A DNA stretch of 64,000 bases, taken from the NCBI GenBank assembly GCA_010909165.1, contig MU008187.1:686247-750246 (forward strand). Direction: 5' to 3'. A model generated the notes under the pieces. That model saw nothing but the letters and a program-made list of their open reading frames with translations. It did not search any database and was not told the DNA's origin. Below, one piece after another: positions 12,960 to 60,532 of the stretch. Every line of letters starts with the position of its first letter. Position 1 is the first letter of the stretch. The translations under genes and the position numbers were made by a program. The DNA is from Anthoceros angustus. Taxonomy: Eukaryota > Plantae > Anthocerotophyta.

Positions 12960-14240
12960 GCAACTAACTTCAGCTGCGGGAAAAAGTTACAACACATCAG
13001 GCCCACAATATTGCTTTAGCTGTCACATGATAATGGCATCTTTTCTGCTTCATCTGACTGGCCAGATAAGAAAATCAATCATGCAAATGCAATGCTCAAT
13101 AGTAGGTTTGATGCCATGCCATTCAGCCATGGAATCAAAGAGCTTGCGACCCTCATGGACTAGTCTCTCATGAGTGCATGCTACTAGAAGGCAAGCAAAA
13201 GTAGCACCATCAGGTTGAATACCGGCAATAACATCTCCTCAGAACCAGCTAGTGCCTTGTGACCAAGTTCATCAGAAGTACCAGACCCAGATATCAGGGT
13301 GGTGAATGTAACCACATCCTTTGTGTCGATGCTGTCAAAAACCTGGCGTGCATCTTCCAGTTCACCATATTTTGCATACATGTCCACCAGGCAGTTGCCC
13401 AAAACTATGTCATCCAAGAGTCCTCTTTCGACAATCTGTGAGTGCAGCTGCCTGCCCTTCTGTAGGGCACCAGTGCTTCCACAAGCCTTCAGAAGGCAAG
13501 CAAAAGTAACATGGTTCGCCGAAATCAGGCCCTCCTCCTCCATTAATGAATCCAGGTTAAGCAACTCTTTGCAAAGTGCTTGCTCCGCATACCCTGCTAT
13601 CAGGGCAGTCCATGTCACCACATCCTTTGTGTTCATGCTGTCAAAAACCCGGCGTGCATCTTCCAGTTGACCAAATTTTGCATACATGTCTACTGAGCGC
13701 ACCAATACGTTATCCAAGCCCCTCATTCGACAATTAGTGAGTGCACCGCCCGCTGCACCGAGCACACGCCAGACAAGGTAAAAGTAACATCGTTAGCCAA
13801 AAGCAGGCCCTCCTGCTCCATTTTTTCCATACACAACAAACACCACATGTCCGAGGCCTTGCTGGGCATACCCAGCTATCAGGGCATTCCATGTCACCAC
13901 ATTCCTTGTGGGCATGCTGTCACCACATTCTTTGAGACCAAATTCTGTGTGTGCATCTTAGAGTTCACCACATTTTACATACATGTCCACCAGGCAGGCC
14001 AACAAACAAGTTAGGAGGATTGACACTGTGCAACACATCACAGAGCACTTTTCTGCCAGATTCCAAGTCTGCGGCAGATGCACAAGCTTGAAGGGTAGCT
14101 ACAAAGACGTAACTGTCCGTTTTCACTTCTGAGCTACCCGTCTCATGATACAGTTGTATGGCCTCCTTAGGCTTCCCATGCTTAGCATATGCAGAGATCA
14201 TGGAAGACAACATGAGGGCATTTGGTTTTCCCACCGACCC
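12960..14240 (-). pseudogene. Degenerate PLS-PPR fragment (PPR repeats plus E-domain start, no DYW)
   Basis: [61 protein letters not shown]; multiple frameshifts and stops. Confidence 0.85.
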
Positions 14241-14478
14241 CACAGGATCTGAGCCAAATTCCAGGTGGGCCCCGACCCCTGATCGCCACGACCCAGCCAG
14301 ATCGAAAGCAAGTCCACACAAAGCAGACGCCGTGCGTGAAGTTCTCCCTATGCCGCTCGATTCTGCTTATATCTACTTCAATGAGAGGTGCCAGGATCAG
14401 TGTTAGCCATCTATGTTTATGCCTCAGTTTGGACAGGAATGAAGTTAAGCAAGCACATTCACTCCGAAAGCAATGTTC

Positions 14479-16505
14479 TCACAGTCTACCCTTGCAACTG
14501 CAACAACCTGCTGCGAATCGATGCACACGATACTCATCCCTAACAACAATGTCTCTCTGTTCAAGCTTTGACATGATCTCAGTAGAACTGCGGCAGTCAC
14601 TACACATGGGTAGATTCTTCTTTACCACCAGAGGCGTCCCACTTGGAGCGTTCAAGAGACCAAACGCCAGAGCTAGCTTCTCAGAATGACCACAAAGCAC
14701 ATCTTCCTTTTCCTTCTCAGACAGAGGTTTCAATACCAATTTTGTGTGAGGTACGTGGCCTCCACCTTGCTTCAGACGTGCTTTTGTGCTCTCTACCTTA
14801 AGTGCAAAATCCTTTCCTTTCTCCCACCAGAAATCTGTGTACCTCCTTATTCACCTCAATGATCGCCACTGCAGGTTTCTTGTTAGCTCCTGCTGCCCTT
14901 CATTGTGTCTCAATCCTGTCTACACCGCTCCACCTACCTGCATCTGCGTAGGCATTAGCCATGAGCACATAGGCAGACCCCATTTGAGGGTCCGCCATGA
15001 ACACCTCACAGCCCTCTCTATATCCCCGTGACTTTTGCAGGCATTCAACAAAGATATCAAGCCCACAAAATCACTTTGGACCCCACATGATAATAGCATT
15101 GTCTCTGCCTCAACTCGATGGCCAGCACGCCCAAGAAGATCAATCATGCAGGTGTAATGCTCAATAGCAGGTTTGATGCCATGTTGTTCAGCCATGGAAT
15201 CAAAGTGTTTGCGACCCTCATGGACTAGTCCCTCATGACTGCATGCTGCTATAAGGCAAGTAAAAGTAGGATCATTAGGCTGAACACCGGCAACTAACAT
15301 CTTCTCAAAGCAAGCTGGTGCCATGTGACCTTTATCACAAGCACCATACCCAGCAATCAGCGATGTCAATGTCACCACATCCTTTGTGGCCATGCTTTCA
15401 AAAACCTGGCGTGCATCTTCCAGTTCACCACATTTTGCATACATGTCCACCAGGCAGTTGCCCACCACTCATCATCCAGCAGTCCTCTTTCGACAATCTG
15501 TGAGTGCAGCTGCCTACGCTTCTGCAAGGCACAAGTGCTTCCACAGGCCTTCAGAAGGCAAGAAAAAGTAACAAGGTTAGCTAAAATGTCCCTTGCCTCC
15601 TCCATTTCTTCATACACAACAAGCGCCTCTTGGCCGAGTTCTTACTGTGCATACCCAGCAATCAATGCTGTCCATGTCACGTCATCCTTTGTGTTCATGC
15701 TGTCAAAAATCTGGCGTGCATCTTCCAGCTCACCACATTTTGCATACATGTCCACCAGGGAGTTGCCAACCAATAAGTTAGAAGGAATGCCACTGCGCAC
15801 CACATCACTGTGTACTTTTCTGCCAGATTCCAAGTCGGCAGCAAATGCACAAGCTTGAAGGGCAGCTACAAAGACATGATCATTCGCCTTCACTCTGACC
15901 TACCCATCTCATGGTATGCTATGGCCCCTCAGGTTTCCCGTGCTTAGCATGTGCAGAGATTATGGAAACCACAAGAAGACATCTGGTTTGCCCACCCTGG
16001 TGCACACACCCATGGACTCGCATATACCTATGTCATCATCATCCTTTGTGTTCATCTTGTCAAAAATCGCGTGCATCTTCCGACTCACCACATTGTGCAT
16101 ACATATTACCAAAGCAACAAACAAGTTAATAGGAATGCCACTCTGCACCACATCACAGTGCACTTTTCCGCCAGATTCCAAGTCGGCGGCCAATGCACAA
16201 GCTTGAAGAGCAGCTACAAAGACATGATCATTCGCCTTCACTCCTGACCTACCCATCTCATGGTATAGTTGTACTGCCTCATTAGGCTTCCCATGTTTAG
16301 CATGGGCAGAGATGATGGAAGACCACGTGAAAACATCTGGTTTGCCTACCCTGGTGAACACATCCATGGCTTTGTCTAGCCTTCCTCCAGATGCATATAT
16401 GCGCAAGATTTCCCCACGTAAGTAATCAACTCGTACCCGAGTTTGACACTGAGATCATAACTCGTCGCCCCACAACCAAAACCTTCTTAGCTGTACAAAG
16501 TTTTA
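14479..16505 (-). pseudogene. 5'-truncated, frameshifted PLS-PPR-E-DYW:KP gene ending GRL
   Basis: PLS repeats spread over several ORFs; C-terminus [13 protein letters not shown]...NLPMCSDCRSS...[15 protein letters not shown]; internal duplication of ~350 bp; 5' end lost at ~16505. Confidence 0.85.
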
Positions 16506-18298: not shown

Positions 18299-18850
18299 AT
18301 GGCCATAGCAAAGGCTGAAGCTTCGTTTCTTCTCTTTGCACGTCATTAGCTTTCAGGCGGGACTCAACAATCTGGTGTGTTTACAGGGATTCTACGAAGA
18401 ACTCCTACTAACCTCATCTTAGGGAGTCGACTCCTGGCAAGCAAAGCTTCCAGGTGCAGCAGTGTAAGTCGCCCAGCACTTCCACTCCTGAGAAAGTGTG
18501 TGGGTAGGGACGGGCTTTCCAGCGATGGTCGTTGCCAGGAGCAGGAGAACCTGCGGCAACAATTTTTTCTGGACCGTACCAGGTGCTGGGTCAACAGACA
18601 GATAAGAATAGCTCCCGTTCTCCTGAATTCCGGCGAAAGGGGTCCGCCGAGGTGCTATGGGTAGACAACATGTTTAAAACAGCTTGGGTTGATGAGCAGC
18701 TCGTTTCCTTGAATATGAGATGGGTCACGGTGCCTCTCCTTCCAAGTCGAGCTCTTCAATAATCATGAACCTGGACGGCGTGCAGGTTCTGAAATGGGCT
18801 CCAGCAGTGTAAGGAGCCCAGCACTTCCACATCCGATGGGCCATGGTGCC
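18299..18850 (+). pseudogene. Orphan 5' module (leader, transit-like peptide, decayed PDF motif) of the GRP-type PPR family
   Basis: Shared leader ccctgaacgATG; [27 protein letters not shown]...FFLDRTRCWVNR/SRSPEFRRKGSAEVLWVDNMFKTAWVDEQL with frameshifts; no PPR body follows. Confidence 0.8.
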
Positions 18851-19056
18851 TCCCTAAAAGAACAAATTATCGCCCGGCCAAGTTCCTAAGCAGTGCATCG
18901 GCTAGCGCCTGTAACCTGCCTATCAAAACCCCTCATGTTGGACCTATCATAACCCCTCATGTTGGACAAGAATCCCAAGAAGGCGAAATTGTAGGGAGGA
19001 GTAGCCTTGCCAGCGCGCAAGACAAGAAGCCAAATGCCACCTATGATCCTCCAAGT

Positions 19057-19212
19057 GGAAGAGAGCGTCCATATGTGCCAGGTCTGAAAACATATGGACA
19101 GGTCTGAAAACTCCTCGACGGAGACCCATAAACACTTGGAAGAGAGCGTCCATATGTGCCAGGTCTGAAAACATATGGACAGGTCTGAAAACTCCTCGAC
19201 GGAGACCCATAA
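19057..19212. repeat. Two direct copies of a ~75-bp sequence (81-bp period) inside an unclassified insertion (~18855-19695)
   Basis: ggaagagagcgtccatatgtgccagg...gagacccataaa occurs twice. Confidence 0.85.
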
Positions 19213-19709
19213 AAGGAGTGGACACAAGGGATAAAGGTTGGCAAGTTGTCCACTTACATACCTCCATCTTTAGCTCGTCGAAAATGGCCGCCCTAGAGAC
19301 CGTGTTAGAAGTATTTAGTCGTACTAGAGACCTTGTTAGAAGTGGGTTCGGGAATCGTCGAGGGGCGCCCACCAGTTGATCAACGAGCTAAGGTACGTTC
19401 TAGAGTCGTCGGGCTGCAGGTCGTGAGAGAATAGCATAGGGGTTCGACGAGGGCCTGGTCCAGGCAAAATTTCATCGCGATTCAAAAAGAAACAAGTGCG
19501 ATTCGGAAGGCCAAGGTCGGGCCAAGAATCTCTCCCGCTATCTATATCCCGTAATACACTCAAATGTACCTCATGATGTCTCCCAACGGTAGATTATCGA
19601 AATCGCTTATGCTAGGTAAAGCCCATGGACGTTTTTAGACTTTAGCTTCTACCTAGGCAATCTGTCAGAGTCTTCAGTTAGACCATCTTCCCAGGGCAGC
19701 CCCTGAACG

Positions 19710-22394
19710 ATGAACACACCATGGCAACCGGACCCGTTCTGGACCCAACAAGTTGATGTGTGTACAGGGATTCTACGAGGAGCCCCCGCTCACCTCATCT
19801 TAGGGAGCCAACCCCTGGCAAGTAAAGCCTCCAGGTGCAGCAGTGTGAGGAGTCCAGTACTTCGACTTCCGAGAAAATGTTTGGGTGGGGACGGGTTTGA
19901 TGATCGTGGCCAGGAGCAGGAGCGTTTGTGGCAAGAATTTTTTCTGGACCCTACCATGTGGTGGGATAACAGACGAAATAAGAAGAGCTCCCGTTCCCCT
20001 GACTTCCGGCGTAAGGGGTCCGGCGAGGTGCTGTGGTTAAACGGCATTTTCAAGCCAGCTTGGGTTGATGAGCAGCTCGTTTCCTTGGATATGCAGATGG
20101 GTCATGGTGCCTTTCCTTCCGACTCCAGCTCTCCGGATAAGCCTGAACTTAGCAGGCGTGCAGGATCGGAAGTGTGCGTCGTCACGGCTGTAACCGTGAG
20201 CACGTTATGTCAGCAGGGAAAGCTTTTTGAGGCCGTTGGAGCCCTGGAATCTCTGGCGCAGACAGACTCTGCTGTTTCGCAGTCTCTGTTTTGCAATGTG
20301 CTGAAACTGTGTACAGCGAAGAAGGATTTGGTTGCGGGGCGACGAGTTCATGATCTCACCGTCAAGCTTGGGTACGAGTCGAATGCATACTTGGGGAACC
20401 ATATCTTGCGCATGTATGCATGTGGAGGTAGGCTAGAGGAGGCCATGGATGTGTTCACCAGAGTGGGGAAACCAGATGTTATCACGTGGGGTTCCATCAT
20501 CTTTGCATATGCTCAGCATGGGAAACCTAATGAGGCCATACAACTGTACCATGAGATGCGTAGGTCAGGAGTGAAGGCGAATGGTCACGTCTTTGTAGCT
20601 GCCCTTCAAGCTTGTGCATTTGCTGCCGACTTGGAATCTGGCAGAAAAGTGCACTGTGATGTGTTGCACAGTGGCATTCCTACTAACTTGTTTGTTGGCA
20701 ACTGCCTGGTGGACATGTATGCAAAATGTGGCGAACTGAAAGATGCACGCCAGGTTTTTGACAGCATGGCCACAAAGGATGTGGTGACATGGAATGCCCT
20801 GATTGCTGGGTATGTAAAATGTGGTGAACTGGAAGATGCACGCCAGGCTTTTGACAACCTGGCCACCAAGAATGTGGTGACATGGACCGCCTTGATTGCT
20901 GGGTATGCACAGCAAGGACTTGGACATGAGGCACTTGTTTTGTATGGAGAAATGGAGGAGGCGGGCCTCATTTTGGCTAACCATTTCACTTTTGCTTGCC
21001 TCCTGAAGGCCTGTGGAAGCACCGGTGCCTTACAGAAGGGAAGGCAGCTGCACTCACGGATTGTTGAAAGAGGACTGCTGGATGACGTAGTTGTGGGCAC
21101 TTGCTTGGTGGACATGTATGCAAAATGTGGTGAACTGGAAGATGCACGCCAGGTTTTTGACAGCATGAACACAAAGAATGTGGTGACATGGACGACGCTA
21201 ATTGCTGGGTATGCACAGCAAGGACTCGGCCAAGACGCGCTTGCTGTGTATGATCAAATGGAGCAGGAAGGCCCCAATTTGGCTAACCATGTTACTTTTG
21301 CTTGCCTTCTGAAGGCCTGTGCAAGCACTGGTGCCTTACAGAAGGGCAGGCAGCTGCACTCACAGATTGTGGAAAGAGGACTGCTGGATGACGTAGTGTG
21401 GGCACCTGCCTGGTGGACATGTATGCAAAATGTGGTGAACTGGAAGATGCACGCCAGGTTTTTGACAGCATGGCCACAAAGGATGTGGTGACATGGACCG
21501 CCTGATATCTGGGTATGGTACTTGTGATGAAGGTCACAAGGCACTAGCTTGTTTTGAGGAGATGTTAGTTGCCGGTATTCAGCCTAATGATGCTACTTTT
21601 ACTTGCCTTCTAGTAGCATGCAGTCATGAGGACTGGTCCATGAGGGTCGCAAGCACTTTGATTCCATGGCTGAACAGCATGGCATCAAACCTACTATTGA
21701 GCATTACACCTGCATGATTGATCTTCTTGGGCGTGCAGGCCATTTAGATGAGGCAGAGAAGATGCTATTATCATGTGAGGGCCAAAGTAATGTTGTGGGC
21801 TTGATGTCTTTGTTGAATGCCTGCAAAAGTCACGGGGATTTAGAGAGGGCGGTGTGGTGTTTTGAAAGCATTGTTAGGCTGGACCCTGAATGCACGTCTG
21901 CGCATGTGCTCATGGCCAATGCTTATGCAGACGCTGGTAGGTGGAGTGATGTAGACAGGATTGAAACACAGAGAATTGTAGCAGGAACTAAGAAACCTGC
22001 AGTGGCTACCATTGAGGTGAATAAGGAGGTACATAGATTTGTGGTGGGAGAAAGAAAAGAGGATATTGCACTTAAGGTGGAGAGCATGAATGCACGTCTG
22101 AAGCGGGAAGGAGGCCACGTACCTCAGACAAAGTTGGTGTTGAAGCCTCTGTCTGAGAAGGGAAAGGAAGATGCGCTCTGTGGGCATGCTGAGAAGCTAG
22201 CTCTAGCGTTTGGTCTGTTGAACACTCCGAGTGGGACACCGCTGGTGGTAACGAAGAATCTACGCATGTGCAGTGACTGCCACAGTTCCACGGAGATCAT
22301 GTCAAGGCTCGAAGAGAGAGACATTGTTGTAAGGGATGGGTACCGTGTGCATCGATTCACAGCTGGTTGTTGCAGTTGTAAGGGTCGACCATGA
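19710..22394 (+). CDS. PDF-motif + PLS-PPR-E1-E2-DYW:KP (GRP-type) organellar RNA-editing factor candidate; apparent small frameshifts near 21398, 21500, 21630
   Basis: N-terminal [47 protein letters not shown]; P-L-S repeats; [10 protein letters not shown] box; GHAEKLA...CSDCH...CCSCKGRP*; intronless. Confidence 0.88.
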
Positions 22395-22699
22395 GAAAAA
22401 TGAAGTACCCAGTGGTCCACTAGTTTTCGCAGAAGAACATTGCTTTTGGGGTGAATGTGCTTGCGTAATGCTATCCCTGTCCAAACTGAGACATGGACAT
22501 GGATGGCTAAGACTGATCCTGGCTCATCATAACAGAAAGAATCTGAATGGAGCACCACGGGGGGATGGCGCCTCGCGTGGACTCGCTTGCAGTCCGGCTG
22601 GGTGATGGAGATAATGGATCGGGGGTGCAGGCCTGGAATTTGGCTCAGATCCGGTCGGGTTGTGCTTGCCAGATTGAGGTTGTGTCGAGATGAGAGAAA

Positions 22700-23640
22700 A
22701 CTTTTTGTGTTGCACAGTGGCATTCATCCGGACTTGTTTGTTAGCAACTGCCTGGTGGACATGTATGCATAATGTGGCGAACTGAAATATGTATGCCAGG
22801 TTTTTCACAGCATGGCCACAAAGGACGTGGTGACATGGAATGCCCTGATATCTGGGCATGCATAGGAAGGACTCAGCCAGGAGGTGCTTGTTCTGTATGG
22901 ACAAATGGAGCTAGAGGGTCTCATTTCAGTCGACCATGTTACTTTTGCTTGCCTTCTGAAGGCCTGTGGAAGCACTGGTGCCCTACAGAAGGGCAGGCAG
23001 CTGCCCTCACAGATTGCAAAAGAGGACTGCTGGATGACGTACTGGTGGGCACCTGTCTGGTGGAAATGTATGCAAAATGTGGTGAACTGAAAGATGCCTG
23101 CTGGGTTTGGGACATCCTGGTCACAAAGACACTGGTATTCTGGACTTTGCTGATTGCTTGGTATGCCCAACAAGGGCTTGGAGGCGCTTGGTGTGTATGG
23201 AGAAATAGAGTAGGGCCTGATTGTAACTTACCATGTTACGTTTTGCTACCTTCAGAAGTCCTGTGGAAGCACTGGTCCCTTACAGAATGGCAGGCAGCTG
23301 CACTCATTTTTCGAAAGAGCACTGGTGTATGGGGTTGTATTCCCACTGCCTTGTGGAAATGCATGCAAAATGTGGTGAGCTGGAGAATGCACGCCAGGAA
23401 TTTGACATCTTGGCCTCAGAGAATGTCGTGACACAGAATGCCCTAATTGGTGGGTATCCATAACAAGGATTTGGCGGAAAGATGCTTGTTGTGTATGGAC
23501 AAATGGAGTAGTAGGGCCCCGTGGCTGACGGTGTTGCATCTGCTTGGCTTCTTAAGGTCTGTTGCAAGCACTGGTGCCTTGCAGAAGGGCGGGCAGCTGC
23601 ACTCACAGATTGTTGAAAGAGGACTGCTGGTTGTCGGAAC
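22700..23640 (+). pseudogene. Degenerate PLS-PPR fragment
   Basis: [48 protein letters not shown] with stops and frameshifts. Confidence 0.85.
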
Positions 23641-37219: not shown

Positions 37220-38331
37220 GACAGTGGATCAAGTTCACCAACACTCAGCTCACACTTATCCTGGTTTCTTGACAGTCACAATAGAATCTACAGGTGCGTT
37301 GCCACCAGAAATGCTTTTCACAGAACCCAATCCAAACCCTCGTGGAGAAAGGCCAAAGAGAAACGTTCACCTCAAAGCAGTCGTTCCTCCCATCTTTCAA
37401 TCTCAATGGGAAGGCCCACTAAGCAGTGGGGCTCGTCAACAAGCCCATGCCATAGCTTTCTTTCTTGATGCCCATATCGTCGCGATCCTCCGATTCCCCA
37501 TACCCTTATGCCCTACGTCGCCGTAGTGCCCTCATGGCTCGTCGGGGCCTCAGGGTGAAAACCCTCTGTACGTCTTCGTATTTTTCAACTGGACGCAAGG
37601 TACTTGACGTGCCCGTGTAGCGTGGTGGTGCGTAATCCCACCTGAATTCTCTCCTACGCGAGTTCGACCCTCGTCCATGTCTACAATGCAGTTTTCCTAC
37701 GGACGCCACAGTCCCAACGTCGGGGTAGTCCAGTTTACACTTCACGCCGAGAGTGACTGATCACCTTTATCACAGCGCGACGGGCGAGAGCTGTCAGCTG
37801 TCCTGCCATGACTGACACCTGGAGTTAAGACATATACTGTACAGTTCACGCGCGAGAGTGATGACAGATCACGTTACTCTGTACGTGTGAAGAGGTCCGA
37901 ATTTTAGAGCTTTTCATGTATATTATATTGTATTGTATTTGATGTATAAGTGAAGTGTGCATTTTCCAACAACGCTGTTTGGCTCTGGACACGCAGGAAA
38001 GCAACAGCAGGAAGCAGGAGGAAGAAGAAGACGCAGGAGCAGAGAGGAGGTAAGCAAACAAGCAAACGAGACACAAGTGCAGGCAGATATGAAGACAGAA
38101 GTGAGGGTAGATATCCTTCGCTTTCATGGCATCTGGGAGAGGAGCAAAGGCAAAGTTGGAAATGGACTCCTCAGCGTCCCAGTACTGGAGCGCATTGAAG
38201 TGGGCAGGCACGAGGCCATGTTGCATCGTTGCATCGCTGTACCCGCAGCGTGCCGCGAGCCCATAAATTGTGCTCCCGGGCTCCGGGCTGCCATCCTCGC
38301 ACCCCACGATTTCTCAGGAAGGTCGTTCAGC

Positions 38332-39006
38332 ATGGCGCAGGAGATGAGCCTGGTTCTGCTCTGCATCGCCCTCCTGGCGGCGGCACTCCCGGCGGTGCGC
38401 GGAGCCGACCCGGACCCTCTGCAGGATTTCTGCGTGGGCGACCTCTCCAAGCCGGGCGACGTGAACGGGTACCCCTGCAAGGCGGGCGAGGACATCACCG
38501 ACGAGGACTTCTTCTTCGACGGCCTGACCAAGGAGAAGATCGTGTCCCCGCTCACCTCGCCGCACAAGTCCACCATCACCTTCGCGCTGTCCAAGCACTG
38601 GCCCGCGCTCAACACGCAGGGCCTGTCCCTGGTGCGCCTGGACCTGGCCCCCGGCGGCGTCGTCGTGCCGCACACGCACGCCCTGGCCACCGAGATCATC
38701 TACGTCCTGCACGGCAAGATCTACACCGGCTTCGTCACCAACGACAACAAGCTCTACGCCAAGACGCTGAGCGCCGGCGAGACGTACATCTTCCCCCGAG
38801 CCCTCCTGCACTTCCAGCTCAATGCCGGCGACGGCCCTGCCGCCAGCGTCAACTTCCTCAACTCGCAGAACCCCGGCATCCAGTTCTCCACCTCCTCGCT
38901 CTTCAAGTCCGGCATCGACCCCGCCGTCCTCGCCAAGTCCTTCGGTATCACCAACGACGACGTCTCGTCCCTCACGGAGAAGATCATCACCCCCAAGGGC
39001 CCCTAA
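38332..39006 (+). CDS. Germin-like protein (cupin), 224 aa, intronless, secreted
   Basis: Signal peptide; box A DPDPLQDFCVGD...NGYPCK; box B PHTHALATE; box C FPRALLHFQ; NSQNPG; strong GC3 bias. Confidence 0.95.
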   Translation: MAQEMSLVLLCIALLAAALPAVRGADPDPLQDFCVGDLSKPGDVNGYPCKAGEDITDEDFFFDGLTKEKIVSPLTSPHKSTITFALSKHWPALNTQGLSLVRLDLAPGGVVVPHTHALATEIIYVLHGKIYTGFVTNDNKLYAKTLSAGETYIFPRALLHFQLNAGDGPAASVNFLNSQNPGIQFSTSSLFKSGIDPAVLAKSFGITNDDVSSLTEKIITPKGP

Positions 39007-45836: not shown

Positions 45837-45920
45837 ATGGCCACAGTACGGCAACCAGATCCGTTTGGGAGCCAACAAATTGGTGTGTGTACAGGGATTC
45901 TACGAGCAGCTCCCGCTCAC
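45837..45920 (+). pseudogene. Short orphan 5' fragment of the GRP-PPR family
   Basis: tgaacgATG then MATVRQPDPFGSQQIGVCTGILRAAPAH, versus MATVWQPDPLWTQQTGVCAG and [28 protein letters not shown] in the full genes. Confidence 0.75.
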
Positions 45921-46443
45921 ACAGTCCACATGTATCACCAGCTTTGATCTGAACTGCAGCCTAAACCACTTTCCGCCCACGCAGAACCTCTGGCTTTCGC
46001 ACAGGATGCCTTGCACGAGGCAGAGCTTGGAGGCTTCCCTCATACTACCAGTTCCCTCAAGCACATGCAGCAGCCTGAAGCACCAGCCCAACTCCTTACA
46101 ATGACGAGAATCCAATACGCAAAAACTTTAAGCTCAGACACGGAAGGCAAGCAAACATACAATCCGCACAGTATGTAAGCAACAATCCCTCTCTCAATCC
46201 TACCCCTTGCCGCTCTGCAGAACCAAGGACGGGTCAAATGGAAACCCTTCACTCGCACGGCTCCATCTGCTACTCCGGACATAGCTCGCGGGAAAAGCGC
46301 TCAGTTCTTAACCTACCTAGGTGTGAACATAGTATGTACCTAGTTGCGGTCTTTCTTGAACCAACAATAAAATGCGAATATGTATAAAGGCTTAGTGCGC
46401 ACGTAGTGTCTGTGTTGCCAGGAGGGGGTTGCTGCAGGCAGCT

Positions 46444-49222
<2,779 letters not shown>

Positions 49223-52497: not shown

Positions 52498-55400
52498 AAT
52501 GGCAAAAAGCTCGGGTTCATCAGGCACCACATTTGATTCAGGTTCACCAGATTACACGTTGGCTGACATGGGAGAAAGCTCAGCTTCATCAAACATTACG
52601 TTTGACTCGAGTTCATCAGATTATACGCTGGCTGACATGGCAGAAAACTCGGCTTCATCAAACATCACGTTTGACTCAACTTCACCAGGTTACACGCTAG
52701 CTGACACGGGAGAAAGCTCGGCTTCATCAGGCACCGCGTTCGAGTCGGGTTCACCACATTATACGCTGGCTAACATGGTAGAAAGCTCGGCTTCATCAAA
52801 CATCACGTTTGACTCAACTTCACCAGGTTACACGCTAGCTGACACGGCAGAAAGCTCGGCTTCATCAGGCACCGCGTTCGAGTCGGGTTCACCACATTAT
52901 ACCGCTAACATGGTAGAAAGTCACCATCAAACATCACGCTTGACTCAACTTCACCAGTTACACGCTAGTCGACACGGAGAAAGCTCGGCTTCATCGAGCA
53001 CCGCGTTCAGTCGGGTTCACCACATTATACCGCTAACATGGTAGAAAGCTCGGCTTCATCAAACATCACGTTTGACTCAACTTCACCGTTACACGCCAGT
53101 CGACACGGAGAAAGCTCGCTCATCGTGCACCACGCTCGACTTGGGTTTACCAGTTACACGCTAGTCGACATGGAGAAAGTCAGCTTCATCAAACATTACG
53201 CTTGACTCGAGTTCATCGATTATCGTCGACATGGCGTAAAACTCGGCTTCATCAAACATCACGTTTGACTCAACTTCACCGGTTACACGCTTAGTCGACG
53301 GAGAAAGCTCGCTTCATCAGCACCGCGTTCGAGTCGGGTTCACCATACGGCTAACATGGTAGAAAGCTCGGCTTCATCAAACATCACGTTTGACTCAACT
53401 TCACCAGGTTACACGCTAGCTGACACGGCAGAAAGCTCGGCTTCATCAGGCACCGCGTTCGAGTCGGGTTCACCACATTATACGCTGGCTAACATGGTAG
53501 AAAGCTCGGCTTCATCAAACATCACGTTTGACTCAACTTCACCAGGTTACACGCTTGCTGACACGGCAGAAAGCTTGGCTTCATCAAACATTACGTTTGA
53601 CTCAGCTTTACCACGTTACACGCTGGCTAACGTGGCAAAAAGCTCAGCTTCATCAAACATCACGTTTGACTCAGCTTCACCAGGTTACACATTGGCTAAC
53701 ATGGCAGAAAGCTCGGCTTCATCAAACATCACGTTTGACTCAACTTCACCAGGTTACACGCTGGCTGACATGGCAGAAAGCTCGGCTTCATCGAACATCA
53801 CATTTGACTTAGCTCCACCAGGTTACACGCTGGCAGACATGGCAAAAAGCTCGGCTTCATCAAATATCACATTCAACTCGGCTTCACTAGGTTACATGCT
53901 AGGTGACATGGCGAAGCTCGCTTCCTCAAACATTACGCTTGACTCAACTTCACCGTTACGCTAGTGACATGGTAGAAAGCCTGGGCTCATCAGCACCACG
54001 CTCGACTTGGGTTTACCGGTTACACGCCAGTCGACATGGCGAAGCTTCGGCTTCATCAAACATCACGTTTGACTCAACTTCACCGGTGGTGACATGGCGA
54101 CTCGGCTTCATCGAACATCACATTTGACTTAGCTCCACCAGGTTACACGCTGGCAGACATGGCAAAAAGCTCGGCTTCATCAAATATCACATTCAACTCG
54201 GCTTCACTAGGTTACATGCTAGGTGACATGGCAGAAAGCTCGGCTTCCTCAAACATTACGTTTGACTCAACTTCAGCCCGTTACACGCTAGCTGACATGG
54301 TAGAAAGCTCGGGCTCATCAGGCACCACGTTCGACTGGTTTACCGGGTTACGGGCGACATGGCGGCTCGGCTTCATCAAACATTACGTTTGACTCAACTT
54401 CACCGTTACGCTAGTGACATGGTAGAAAGCTTCGGGTTCATCGGGCTTTCGTTACTCGGGTTTACGGTTACACGCTAGTTGACATGGCGAGCTTCGGCTT
54501 CATCAAACATTACGTTTGACTCAACTTCAGCCCGTTACGCTTCGACATGGTAGAAAGCTTCGGGCTCATTAGGCACCACGTTCGACTCGGTTTACCGGTT
54601 ACACGCCAGTCGACATGGCGTAAAGCTCGGCTTCCTCAAACATTACGTTTGACTCAACCCGCATTGCTACACCAGAGTCGACATGGCGAAGCTCGGCTCA
54701 TCGTGCACCACGCTCGACTCGGGTTTACCAGGTTACACGCTAGCTGACATGGCAGAAAGCTCGGCTTCATCAAACATTACGTTTGACTCAACTTCAGCCC
54801 GTTACACGCTAGCTGACATGGTAGAAAGCTCGGGCTCATTAGGCACCACGTTCGACTCGGGTTTACCAGGTTACACGCTAGTTGACATGGCAGAAAGCTC
54901 GGCTTCCTCAAACATTACGTTTGACTCAACCCGCATTGCTACACCAGAGTCGACATGGCGAAAGCTCGGCTCATCGTGCACCACGCTCGACTCGGGTTTA
55001 CCGGGTTACACGCCAGTCGACATGGCGAAGCTCGGCTTCATCAAACATTACGTTGACTCGGGTTTACCGGGTTACACGCTAGTTGACATGGCGAAGCTTC
55101 GGCTTCATCAAACATTCGTTTGACTCAACTTCACCGTTACACGCTGACATGGTAGAAAGCTCGGGCTCATTAGGCACCACGTTCGACCGGTTTACCGGGT
55201 TACACGCTATGGCGACATGGCGGCTTCCTCAAACATTACGCTTGACTCAACCCGCCCCGGCTTACCAGATCGACATGGTAGCTTCCGGGCTCATGCACCA
55301 CGTTACTGGTTTACCGGGTTACCACATCGTAAAGCTCGGCTTCATCAAACATTACGCTTGACTCAACTTGACCCGTTACGGTAGAAAGCTCGGGCTCATC

Positions 55401-55885: not shown

Positions 55886-56284
55886 TTGAGGAGACTGGCA
55901 CGGGCCAAGATGGTCAAGGAGACAGGCACGAGCAAGATGAGGAGGTTAGAATGGGCCAAGATGTAAAATGTCCTTGCCAGCACTTTGGTGCTTATTAGTA
56001 ATATTGTAAAAGATATAATTTGAATCATTAAAATTTCTTTAAAACTCCAAACCATTATCTCTCCTTTTGCTTATAAAAAAGATATTAAGTTAGCTTATCC
56101 CAATTTTGCTTTGTTATTTTATAAATTTTAAATTTAACCTTTGAAGTATAATGTTTTTTTTTCCATCAAAGTGCAAGTCAATTTGCACTTGTCCGTATCC
56201 ATCCTTGTTGGTTATTCAAATCCTACCCTTACCATCGACATACAAATTGTTCGTACATTTCGGAATAAACAGATGCTCCTTGTA

Positions 56285-56975
56285 TAGTAAATGAGTAAGT
56301 GAGTAAGTCAATAGGTGAATAAATGAGTATATGAAGGACAGAATAAGCGAGTAAATGAGTAAATAAATAAATAATTGAATGAGTGAACAAGTGAGTAAGT
56401 AAATAAGTGGCTAAAGGAGTGAGTAAGTAAATGAATAACTGAGTAAATAAATACGAGAATAAAAAATAAATAAAGTGAGCAATAAAATAAATGAGTAGAT
56501 AAGTAAATAAATAAATAGATAAAACTGTGGATAAGTACGTAAGTGAGTAAGAATAAAATAAATAAAAGAGTAAATAAATAAGTGAGTACGTGAATAAATG
56601 GATAAATGAGGAAGTAAACGAATGAGGAAGTAAACGAATGAGGAAGTAAACGAATGAGGAAGTAAACGAATGAGGAAGTAAACGAATGAGGAAGTTAACG
56701 AATGAGGAAGTAAACAAATGAGGAAGTAAACGAATGAGGAAGTAAAGGAATGAGGAAGTAAACGAATGAGGAAGTAAATGAATGAGGAGTAAATAAATGA
56801 ATGAGTACATAAATGAATGAGTAAATAAATGACTGAGGAAATAAATGAATGAGGAAACAAATGAATCAGTAAATAAATGAATGAGCAAGTAAGTGAATTA
56901 ATGAGTAAGTAAATAAGTGAATTAATGAGTAAGGAAAAAAGTGAATTAATGAGTAAGTACATAAGTGAAAAAGTG
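56285..56975. repeat. A/G-rich low-complexity tract with a 16-bp core repeat (~11 copies at ~56605-56785)
   Basis: gaatgaggaagtaaac tandem copies flanked by degenerate (aatgagtaa)-like repeats. Confidence 0.9.
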
Positions 56976-57345
56976 AGTCGGCCAGTTACTCCCACAACCA
57001 CGCCACGAGAGGTAAAAACGAACTTGCAAATCCACTGTCATACCGCTGCAAGCTGAATCCAGCAAGCGTAGCCCCGTTACCACAGGATCTGGGTCAAAAT
57101 CCCACGCCTCCACCGGGGCCCTGACCCCTGATCTCCAAGACCCAGCCAGATCCCAAGCGAGACCCCACGAGGCAGACGAAGCGCGTGAAGTTCCTCCCGC
57201 CCCGGTCTGTTCTGTTATGATGAGAGGTGCCAGGATCCGTGTTAGCCATCTATGTCCACGTCTCAGTTTGGACAGGAATGGAAATGTGCATGTCTCAGCA
57301 AGTACATTCACCCCAATAAGCTCTGGCCACACTTCTTCAGTCTCC

Positions 57346-60300
57346 TCACGGTCGGCCCTTACAACTGCAACAACCAGCTGTGAATCGATGCACACGGTAC
57401 CCATCCCTTACAACAATGTCTCTCTGTTCAAGCCTTGACATGATCTCCGTGGAACTGTGGCAGTCACTGCACATGCGTAGATTTTTTGTTACCACGAGAG
57501 GTGTCCCACTCGGAGTGTTCAACAGACCAAACGCTAAAGCTAGCTTCTCAGCATGCCCACAAGCGCATCTTCCTTTTCCTTCTCACACACTGGCTTCAAC
57601 ACCAATTTTGTGCGAGGTACATGGCCTCCTTCCTGCTTCACACGTGCATATGTGCTCTCCACCTTAAGCGCAATATCCTTTCTCCTTTCTCCCACCAGAA
57701 ATCTGTGTACCTCCTTATTCACCTCAATGGTCGCCACTGCAGGTTTCTTGTTAGCTCCTGCTGCACTTCTCTGTGTTTCAATCCTGTCTACATCGCTCCA
57801 CCTATCTGCATCTGCATAGGCATTGGCCATGAGCACATAGGCAGACGCCATTTGAGGGTCCAGCCTAACAATGCTTTCAAAACACCACACAGCCCTCTCT
57901 ATATCCCCGTGACTTTTGCAGGCATTCAACAAAGACGTCAAGCCCACAACATTACTATAGCCCTCGCATGATAACAGCATCTTCTCTGCCTCGTCTAAAT
58001 GGCCAGCACGCCCAAGAAGATCAATCATGCAGATGTAATGCTCTATAGTAGGTTTGATGCCATGCTGTTCAGCCATAGAATCAAAGTGTTTGCGACCCTC
58101 ATGGACCAGTCCCTCGTGGCTGCATGCTCCTAGAAGGCAAGAAAACGTTGCATCATTAGGCAGAATACCGGCTACTAACATCTCCTCAAAACAAGCTAGT
58201 GCCTTGTGACCTTCATCACAAGCACCATAGCCAGATATCAGGGCAGTCCATGTCACCACGTTCTTTGTGGTCAAGCTGCCAAAAACCTGGCGTGCAGCCT
58301 CCAATTTCCCACATTTTGCATACATGTCTATGAGGCAGTTGCCCAACACTACGTTATCCAGCAATCCTCTTTTGAGAATCTGTGAGTGCAGCTGCCTGCC
58401 CTTCTAAGGCACCAGTGCTTGCACAGGCCTTCAGAAGGCAAGCAAAAGTAACATGGTCAGCCAAAATCAGGCCCTCCTCCATTTGTCCATACAACAAGCG
58501 CCTCTTAGTCCTTGCTGTGCATACCCAGCGATCAGGGCATTCCATGACACCACATCCTTTTGTGCCAAGCTGTCAAAGACCTGGCGTGCATCTTCCAGTT
58601 CACCACATTTCGCATACATGTCCACCAGGCAGTTGCCCACCAGTACGTCATCCAGCAGTCTTCTTTCGACAATCTGTGAGTGCAGTTGTATGCCCTTCTG
58701 CAAGGCACCAGTGCTTGCACAGGCCTTCAGAAGGCAAGCATGTGGTCAGCCAAAATGAGGCCTCCTCCTCCATTTGTCCATACACACAAGCGCCTCTTGG
58801 CCGAGTCCTTGCTGTGCATACCCAGCAATCAGGGCATTCCATGTCACCACATCCTTTGTGGCCATGCTGTCAAAAACCTGGCGTGCATCTTCCAGTTCAC
58901 CACATTTTGCATACATGTCCACCAGGCAGTTGCCCACCACTACGTCATCCAGCAGTCCTCTTCGACAATCTGAGTGCAGCTGCCTGCCCTTCTGTAAGGC
59001 ACCAGTGCTTGCACAGGCCTTCAGAAGGCAAGCAAAAGTAACATGGTCAGCCAAAATCAGGCCCTCCTGCTCCATTTGTCCATACACTACAAGCGCCTCT
59101 TGGCCGAGTCCTTGCTGTGAATACCCAGCAATCAGTGCATTCCATGTCACCACATCCTTTGTGGCCATGCTGTCAAAAACCTGACGTGCATCTTCCAGTT
59201 TGCCACATTTCGCATACATGTCCACCAGGCAGTTGCCCACCATTACGTCATCCAGCAGTCCCCTTTCGACAATCTGTGAGTGCAGCTGCATGCCCTTCTG
59301 TAAGGCGCCAGTGCTTGCACAGGCCTTCAGAAGGCAACCAAAAGTAACACGATCAGCCAAAATGAGGCCTGCCTCCTCCATTTGTCCATACACAGCAAGC
59401 GCCTCTTGCCCGAGTCCTTGCTGTGCATACCCACCAATCAGGGCAGTCCATGTCACACATCCTTTGTGGCCATGTCAAAAACCTGGCGTGCATCTTTCAG
59501 TTCACCACATTTTGCATACATGTCCACTAGGCAGCTGCCAACAAATAAGTTAGTAGAAATGTCACTCTGCACCACATCACAGTGCACTTTTCTGCCAGAT
59601 TCCAGGTCGGCAGCCAATGCACACGCTCGAAGGGCAGCCGCAAAGACGTGAGCATCTGCCTTCACTCCTGACCTACGCATCTCATGGTAGAGTTGTATGG
59701 CCTCCTTAGGTTTCCCGTGGTTAGCATGTGCAGAAATTATGGAAACCCACATGAAGACATTTGGTTTACCCACCCTGGTGAACACATCCATGGCCTCCTG
59801 CAGCCTACCTTCAGATGCATACATGCGCAAGATATGGTTCCCCAAGTATGCATCCGACTCGTACCCAAGTTTGGCAGTGAGATCATGTACTCGACGCCCC
59901 ACAACCAAATCCTTCTTAGCTGTACACAGTTTTAGCACAGTGTAAAACAGAGACTGAGATACAGCAGCACCTGTGTGCGCTAGAGATTCCAGGGCTCCAA
60001 CAGCCTCAGAAAGCTTCCCCTGCTGACATAACGTGCTCACGGTAACAGCCGTAACGACGTCCATTTCCGATCCTGCACGCCTCCCAGGTTCAGGCTTATC
60101 CTGAGAGCTGGACTCGGAAGGAGAGTCACCATGGCCCATGTGCATGTCCGAGGAAATGAGCTGCTCATCAATCCAAGCTGGCTTAAACATGTTGTTTAAC
60201 CACAGCACCTCGCCGGACCCCTTTCGCCGGAAGTCAGGAGAATGGGAGCTCTTCTTATCTCGTCTGTTGTCCCACAACGTGGTAGGCTCCAGGAAAAATA

Positions 60301-60532
60301 GTTGCCACAAGTGCTCCTGCTCCTGGCAACGACAATCGCTGGAAAACCCATCCCTACCCACACACTTTCTCGGCAGGGGAAGTGCTGGGCTCCTTACACC
60401 GCTGCACCTGGAGGCTTTGCTTGCCAGGGGCGGACTCGCTAACATGAGGTTAGCAGGAGCTCCTCGTGTAACCCCCGCACACACACCAGTTTGTTGGGTC
60501 CACAACGGATCCGGTTGCCATACCGTGGCCAT
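57346..60532 (-). CDS. PDF-motif + PLS-PPR-E-DYW:KP (GRP-type) gene with several small deletions (pseudogene or assembly errors)
   Basis: [47 protein letters not shown]; ~5 near-identical PLS triplets; [10 protein letters not shown]; GHAEKLA...CSDCH...CCSCKGRP*. Confidence 0.85.

Follow-up and report, generated by a model that had tools for sequence, protein, structure and literature searches.

Site-specific RNA editing in plant organelles is carried out by PPR-DYW proteins, on which guide-free programmable tools for C-to-U and U-to-C editing are also based. In hornworts, two subtypes of the DYW:KP deaminase domain have been described, GRP and DRH (PMC9478123). U-to-C editing by DYW:KP domains was shown with synthetic designs to proceed via a conserved lysine (PMC9478123, PMC11845758); precisely, the synthetic GRP designs KP2 and KP3, which are described as a PLS tract with the C-terminal domains, perform U-to-C editing in E. 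coli (PMC9478123). In OSB proteins, the PDF motif mainly mediates high-affinity binding to single-stranded DNA (ssDNA) (PMC13393729); the PDF of OSB1 was reported to be sufficient for ssDNA binding, and AtOSB2 was reported as a tetramer (PMC6963530). Here we analysed a stretch of 64,000 nt of the hornwort Anthoceros angustus (contig MU008187.1, positions 686,247 to 750,246 of the forward strand; hereafter the window), in which a gene at positions 19710-22394, here called copy A, carries an OSB-type PDF domain ahead of a PPR array and a GRP-type DYW:KP deaminase domain. The observations reported below are probably best explained, taken jointly, by an ancestral PDF-PPR gene family, of which decayed copies are left in the window and in whose intact members the PDF would be an accessory.

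An earlier note on this DNA, made by a model from the letters alone, had reported 51 residues resembling the PDF motif at 19926-20078 (+), and the translation of the window returned exactly these residues. Their placement between a leader and the first PPR was borne out by a single open reading frame (ORF), 19710-21491, that runs without interruption from its ATG through the leader and the PDF domain into about 11 PPR motifs. The array was recognised by the Pfam models PPR, PPR_1 and PPR_2 (PF01535, 4e-60; PF13041, 9e-57), and a C-terminal ORF (21666-22394) encodes the E motif and the DYW deaminase, with KKP at residue 109, HAE at residue 174, CSDC at residue 202 and GRP at the end. Tandem PPRs followed by an E motif are the layout of a PLS-class PPR editing factor, and the KP box, the HxE...CxxC zinc site and GRP in place of DYW fit the GRP subtype of the DYW:KP deaminases, for which U-to-C editing was shown with the synthetic consensus designs KP2 and KP3. 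As regards the claim that one protein combines all these elements, the PDF and the PLS-PPR tract do lie in one ORF upstream of the GRP-type DYW:KP domain, but the frame is broken before the deaminase ORF is reached. The positions of all the features are collected in Table 1.

The leader of copy A is rich in Ser, Leu and Ala, with 7 basic and 2 acidic residues and no Glu, and by this composition it is likely an organellar presequence, predicted to direct the protein to an organelle. In a 330-residue model of copy A, based on 38 homologs, the leader is disordered (predicted local confidence, pLDDT, ~35), the PDF domain is confident at residues 63-131 (pLDDT 90-96), the linker at residues 132-150 has a pLDDT of ~54, and a confident PPR superhelix follows. 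No Pfam match to an SSB or OB domain was found in copy A, and its N-terminal 163 amino acids (aa) matched no Pfam family at all at E <= 1. Since an SSB/OB domain is lacking, the gene does not encode an OSB protein, with which it has the PDF module alone in common.

For the PDF we built a 64-column profile from the two good copies of the domain in the window, that of copy A and that of a paralog, copy B, and we used it in an exhaustive HMMER search of 1.84 billion representative proteins. The search returned 626 matches at E <= 1e-3, far more than chance would give; of these, 161 had an E-value of 1e-10 or less and 16 one of 1e-30 or less. A Populus protein named "protein OSB1, mitochondrial-like" (P0029, E = 7.9e-24) was among the matches. 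The typical match was a protein of 250-500 aa with 1-13 matched stretches in the direction of its C-terminus, that is, the OSB layout. In an alignment of 131 PDF sequences, 15 of the 15 invariant or near-invariant columns are retained by copy A (W9, F13, P16, W19, D21, R23, K26, P32, D33, F34, K37, L43, W44, P51 and W53); the conserved columns of the domain are mostly aromatic (W, F) and basic (R, K).

AlphaFold2, run on the 131-sequence alignment for the PDF domain alone, gave a small alpha/beta module (pLDDT 93.5; predicted template modelling score, pTM, 0.78), in which a helix, three short strands and a helix follow one another. In a shape search of the ESM Atlas, this model superposed with a template modelling (TM) score of 0.91 and a root-mean-square deviation of 1.1 A over 62 residues on a Streptophyta cluster, 98% of which is annotated as PF00436 SSB (OSB), and on three PPR/DYW clusters with TM 0.94, 0.91 and 0.85; the fold agreement with OSB sets one prediction beside another, and no solved PDF structure exists. 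On the strength of the profile matches, Populus OSB1 included, and of the superposition on OSB/SSB clusters, we accept the motif of the window, in sequence as in predicted fold, as a genuine PDF domain of the OSB type, as the earlier note had claimed. We claim no known fold for it: among the solved structures the best PDB match of the profile had an E-value of 0.82, the best Foldseek match one of 4.7, and a wide VIA-align search reached a Z of 3.5. Pfam has no model for the PDF. A word-indexed search limited to the PDF of copy A gave no match, and this reflects the sensitivity of the index, because the exhaustive HMMER search found hundreds of matches.

The PDF was also matched beyond OSB and PPR proteins, in a 1526-aa kinesin-motor protein of Coptis chinensis with three matched stretches (P0054) and in proteins with 11-13 tandem copies of the domain (P0001, Kingdonia uniflora; P0009). 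In the ESM Atlas, the PDF model was matched also by hypothetical phage (Uroviricota) proteins of 187-199 aa, in two clusters with TM 0.73 and 0.67; a phage relative of the PDF was dropped as unsupported, the best Foldseek match in BFVD having an E-value of only 2.7.

We retrieved 226 PPR homologs with copy A and with an intact DRH-type gene of the same window, the nearest named protein being no closer than 55% identity in these searches. An N-terminal PDF was present in 50 of the 226, from Diphasiastrum and Adiantum, and in none of the Cryptomeria and Ginkgo homologs among them. Considering how these 50 proteins end, 13 have a canonical DYW, one has GRP and 36 have another terminus (E-type or truncated), while two of the four GRP-type database proteins are without a PDF. 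PDF-PPR fusions were found also from the side of the motif, with about 12 among the top 150 motif matches, each with 1-3 N-terminal PDFs; they come from Adiantum, Ceratopteris, Selaginella, Diphasiastrum, three Pteridium transcripts and Logan assemblies. In the Pteridium transcripts the PDF and the PPRs lie on single mRNAs. The special tie of the PDF to DYW:KP domains and U-to-C editing that had been suggested did not survive these counts: the N-terminal PDF is carried also by PPR proteins with canonical DYW or other termini, so its pairing is not specific to DYW:KP, and it occurs in Selaginella as well, a genus reported to lack U-to-C editing. In lycophytes and ferns the pairing is found in intact proteins, ordinary C-to-U editors among them, which are annotated only as hypothetical or as PPR proteins.

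Two PDF-PPR proteins of the GRP type are intact, P0095 (753 aa) and P0250 (950 aa). Their loci share only about 70% identity with the DNA of the window, which places them in another species. In the same sample (SRR33208241, another species), an independently assembled member (L003:6001-8506) is split: an ORF of 162 aa with the leader and the PDF is followed, 44 bp on and in another frame, by an ORF of 657 aa that reads as PPR-E-DYW:KP-like. The linker is where the break falls, and the last residues of the protein, ERRN, are atypical. A short intron joining the two ORFs was considered and rejected, as no in-frame junction could be seen by eye.

Among the homologs, the columns of the PDF hardly vary, in contrast with the leader and the linker on either side, which could not be aligned; this indicates constraint on the domain. 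In a tree of PDF motifs the PPR-borne copies cluster together (8 label changes vs 38 when labels were shuffled); the alignment is short and the support weak, and the tree may be compatible with a single origin of the PPR-borne PDF. Many Diphasiastrum PDF-PPR proteins have a second upstream PDF, often degenerate (P0237, P0223, P0176, P0216), and one Logan protein (P0003) has three good PDF copies ahead of its PPR array.

Copy A is read in three frames. Between the ORF 19710-21491 and the ORF 21666-22394 the frame path is 0, 2, 1, 0, and the alignment with copy B attributes it to three 1-bp deletions within the PPR array. The deaminase ORF of the fusion with DYW:KP described in the earlier note is present; that the gene is interrupted ahead of it by these deletions had gone unnoticed. 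The paralog had been given at 60158-60310; the motif is there, on the minus strand and 78% identical to that of copy A over 64 residues, whereas the plus strand at these positions is noise. In copy B at least four indels shift the frame, one of them of 2 bp (1-bp or 2-bp deletions at ~59457, 58787, 58406 and 57562), besides a pair of deletions of 2 and 1 bp (~58971 and 58963) that is in frame overall, and whole repeat units were gained and lost as well in the alignment of the two copies. Both copies are frame-broken as assembled, and working proteins at these loci are not supported. We consider it quite probable that copies A and B are pseudogenes; most likely, this locus is a graveyard of the GRP-type PDF-PPR gene family.

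We compared the gene also with the unitigs of four public runs (X1, X4, X6 and X12). Between 11,660 and 46,387 unitigs per run matched positions 19600-22475 with at least 95% identity, while in the same runs no unitig matched the intergenic region 18876-19595. Numbers so high indicate that the GRP-type PPR family has very many near-identical copies in several related organisms. In the unitigs, the deleted state of the window is predominant at 21397/21398 (87% of the depth in X1) and makes up 49-74% at 21500; these are multi-copy unitigs of 70-90 nt, that hold at most 49% of the words of the gene in any run and do not resolve the locus.

As an explanation of these observations, we propose that a tandem cluster of GRP-subtype PLS-PPR-E-DYW:KP genes of the hornwort type lies partly in the window. 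Ancestrally, these genes would have encoded, in this order, a leader to the organelle, a single OSB-type PDF, a short and flexible linker, the PPRs, the E motifs and the DYW:KP deaminase. Early in the evolution of land plants, PLS-class PPR editing factors would have acquired the PDF at their N-terminus, and in hornworts, lycophytes and ferns many of them now carry it, together with DYW:PG, with DYW:KP or with E alone. Copies A and B, a 5' fragment named copy C and two more decayed copies would then belong to a very large gene family with a fast turnover. In the intact members (P0095, P0250), the PDF may hold single-stranded nucleic acid without regard to sequence, beside the 5' end of the PPR footprint, and would in this way raise affinity or keep the RNA in single-stranded form. 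A grip on the same RNA strand is the simplest model, because one short linker separates the PDF from the first PPR.

In this scheme the PDF would be an accessory, outside catalysis. It appears not to be needed for catalysis, because the synthetic GRP designs, described without a PDF, edit U to C; the idea of a required built-in cofactor, advanced in the earlier note, is weakened by the same U-to-C editing of KP2 and KP3 (PMC9478123). More tentatively, and with rather more doubt than conviction, we suggest that the PDF is an ancient and selectively maintained N-terminal accessory of the PLS-PPR editors of hornworts, lycophytes and ferns, a built-in single-strand grip that may serve in cis as helper proteins such as MORF serve in trans in seed plants, or that may couple editing to the nucleoid.

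Some points weigh against the proposal of a decayed family with an accessory PDF. Copy A is free of in-frame nonsense codons once its three deletions are allowed for. The deletions lie within 232 bp, sum to -3 and each shortens a short homopolymer (GG, TT, GGG), and contractions of this kind also look like consensus errors in a repeat family that is hard to polish. Compared with each other, copies A and B have a ratio of nonsynonymous to synonymous substitution rates (dN/dS) of 0.42 overall, 0.65 in the PDF and 0.31 in the PPRs, hence not clearly neutral, on few sites and with selected and neutral periods mixed. Binding to ssDNA by the PDF is known for OSB proteins only (OSB1/OSB2) and is extended to the PPR-borne domain by analogy. 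Finally, the status of the PDF-PPR fusion as undescribed is not fully secure: in agreement with the earlier note, our full-text search found no paper that describes the fusion, a 2026 kingdom-wide survey of editing factors included, the founding DYW:KP papers (Gerke 2020, Gutmann 2020) being outside its coverage.

The first of these points could be taken to mean that copies A and B are functional PDF-PPR-DYW:KP genes, with frames broken by mistakes of assembly or polishing in a highly multi-copy family; the catalytic motifs of copy A are all kept, and its dN/dS against copy B suggests past constraint. We regard this as unlikely. A generally error-ridden assembly is disfavoured because the window also holds a 3.2-kb PPR ORF without interruption, and the predominance of the deleted state at 21397/21398 in the public unitigs counts against polishing errors as well. 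The lesions of copy B, with its longer list of indels and its repeat-unit gains and losses, go in the same direction, and a sister copy has stops and substitutions of conserved residues, beyond what indel errors make. In addition, GRP proteins are reported to be under-represented in transcriptomes (PMC9478123). On the side of function, ssDNA binding is the sole known biochemical activity of the PDF (PMC6963530, PMC13393729), and the domain is conserved residue for residue between the OSB and the PPR contexts. On this basis the PPR-borne PDF could bind organellar ssDNA, either as a tether to the nucleoid or to the transcription bubble for co-transcriptional editing, or so as to bring the deaminase to ssDNA. 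However, its position beside an RNA-binding array, on a linker of ~20 residues, favours the same RNA strand, and RNA is edited by synthetic PPR-DYW:KP designs for which no PDF is described, so that we judge this role decidedly improbable. As for editing of ssDNA, we know of no DNA editing by DYW enzymes, which counts against it. The PDF could also be a protein-protein or oligomerisation module, for example one that recruits OSB, and not bind nucleic acid. The AtOSB2 tetramer (PMC6963530), the presence of the PDF on unrelated scaffolds such as the kinesin P0054, and a PDF model with no structural match to any solved nucleic-acid-binding fold would fit such a module. We give it very little credence, given the conserved W/F and R/K columns, which we take as typical of single-strand binders, and the reported sufficiency of the OSB1 PDF alone for ssDNA binding (PMC6963530).

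Table 1. Positions of copy A, of its parts and of the related genes and gene fragments found in the window.
Feature	Position	Strand	Evidence
Copy A, leader (residues 1-60)	19710-19889	+	ATG-initiated ORF; pLDDT 33-38, disordered
Copy A, OSB-type PDF domain (residues 63-131)	19896-20102	+	Profile match 19905-20096; core in the earlier note 19926-20078
Copy A, flexible linker from PDF to PPR array	20103-20159	+	pLDDT ~54; unalignable among homologs
Copy A, PLS-type PPR array	20163-21830	+	Pfam; 1-bp deletions at ~21398, 21500, 21629
Copy A, E motif	21831-22016	+	Pfam E_motif PF20431, 1.8e-9
Copy A, GRP-type DYW:KP deaminase domain	22113-22385	+	Pfam DYW_deaminase PF14432, 1.5e-32; stop 22392-22394
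Copy B, paralogous leader-PDF-PPR-E-DYW:KP (GRP) gene	57346-60532	-	PDF 60140-60331, hmmsearch 155 bits; 90% DNA identity to copy A
Copy C, 5' fragment: leader and frame-split PDF, no PPR tract behind	18362-18762	+	tblastn, two frames
Isolated leader fragment, residues 1-30 only	45837-45926	+	tblastn 67% identity, E = 2e-9
Two more decayed PPR(-E-DYW:KP) copies, no detectable PDF	12995-16445	-	tblastn pieces in different frames
Intact DRH-type PPR-DYW:KP gene, ~1057 aa	39309-42482	-	Uninterrupted ORF, KKP box, ends GDRH

A six-frame scan of the window with the PDF profile found three sites alone, those of copies A, B and C. Copy C corresponds to the decayed copy that had been reported at ~18550-18705; it is real, but it is split over two frames. 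Its first half lies in the ORF 18377-18664 and its second in the ORF 18532-18762, and hmmsearch matched it with 25.8 bits at profile positions 1-24 and with 75.6 bits at positions 13-64, in different frames. Of the decayed copies without a PDF, the one at 15468-14485 has internal stops, GRL for the terminal GRP and CSDCR for CSDCH. The DRH-type gene sits between the broken GRP-type copies. At its N-terminus, hhalign aligned 18 residues weakly (E 0.0057, probability 6%) with the last part of the PDF profile, and we do not claim a PDF relic there.

Directly downstream of copy A (22650-23629, +) there are fragments of PPR motifs in three frames, which look like the remains of another family member, and between copies C and A there is a duplicated segment (18886-19372, -). 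Just 3' of copy B (56229-57001, -) we noted a repetitive ORF rich in Leu, Phe, Ser and His; low-complexity or tandem stretches of this kind flank the PPR copies. Between the PPR copies lie ORFs with ordinary domains (37957-39006, 47853-48779 and 53356-53964, all +), namely a cupin/germin-like ORF (PF00190, 5e-35), a Radical_SAM C-terminal (ELP3-like) piece and an RPAP1_C-like piece.

Published descriptions and designs treat PPR editors as a PPR array with E and DYW domains, and an extra conserved PDF apparently went unremarked, although we find it on about a fifth of the sampled PLS-PPR proteins from seedless plants. Its accessory role is a hypothesis that can be tested cheaply in editing assays of native factors; if it is true, the PDF might make PPR editors, native or synthetic, bind more tightly or work more efficiently. 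The domain also gives a new handle on editing in lineages for which MORF helpers are not known to have been reported. The biology of OSB proteins gains a second context for the PDF domain. Of less weight is the locus of the window itself, with copies that look dead and with a link to U-to-C editing that fails.

In comparison with known systems, OSB1-4 combine an OB-fold-like domain with one to five C-terminal PDF motifs. Copy A has the same PDF module of about 50-60 residues, with the same predicted fold and the same invariant W/F/P/WW/D/R/K/PDF/K/LW/P-W columns, and it is probably targeted to organelles too; unlike OSB proteins, it has a single PDF, at the N-terminus and joined to a PPR array and a deaminase, with no SSB/OB-fold. 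With the hornwort GRP-type factors and the designs KP2 and KP3, copy A has in common the PLS-PPR array, the E motifs, KKP, HAE, the CSDC zinc site and GRP, whereas the published GRP-type descriptions and designs begin at the first PPR motif with no PDF mentioned, and the copies of the window are frame-broken. The succession of leader, one or two PDFs, linker and PLS-PPR array is found also in the lycophyte and fern proteins (for example Diphasiastrum P0186, Adiantum P0071, Selaginella P0125, Ceratopteris P0097), but most of these end with a canonical DYW or with E only, hence with a C-to-U type deaminase or with none. As a purely functional analogy, the MORF/RIP proteins of the editosomes of seed plants offer a possible parallel, as accessories without catalytic function that help PLS-PPR proteins to bind RNA better; unlike the PDF, they are separate polypeptides of unrelated fold that act in trans.

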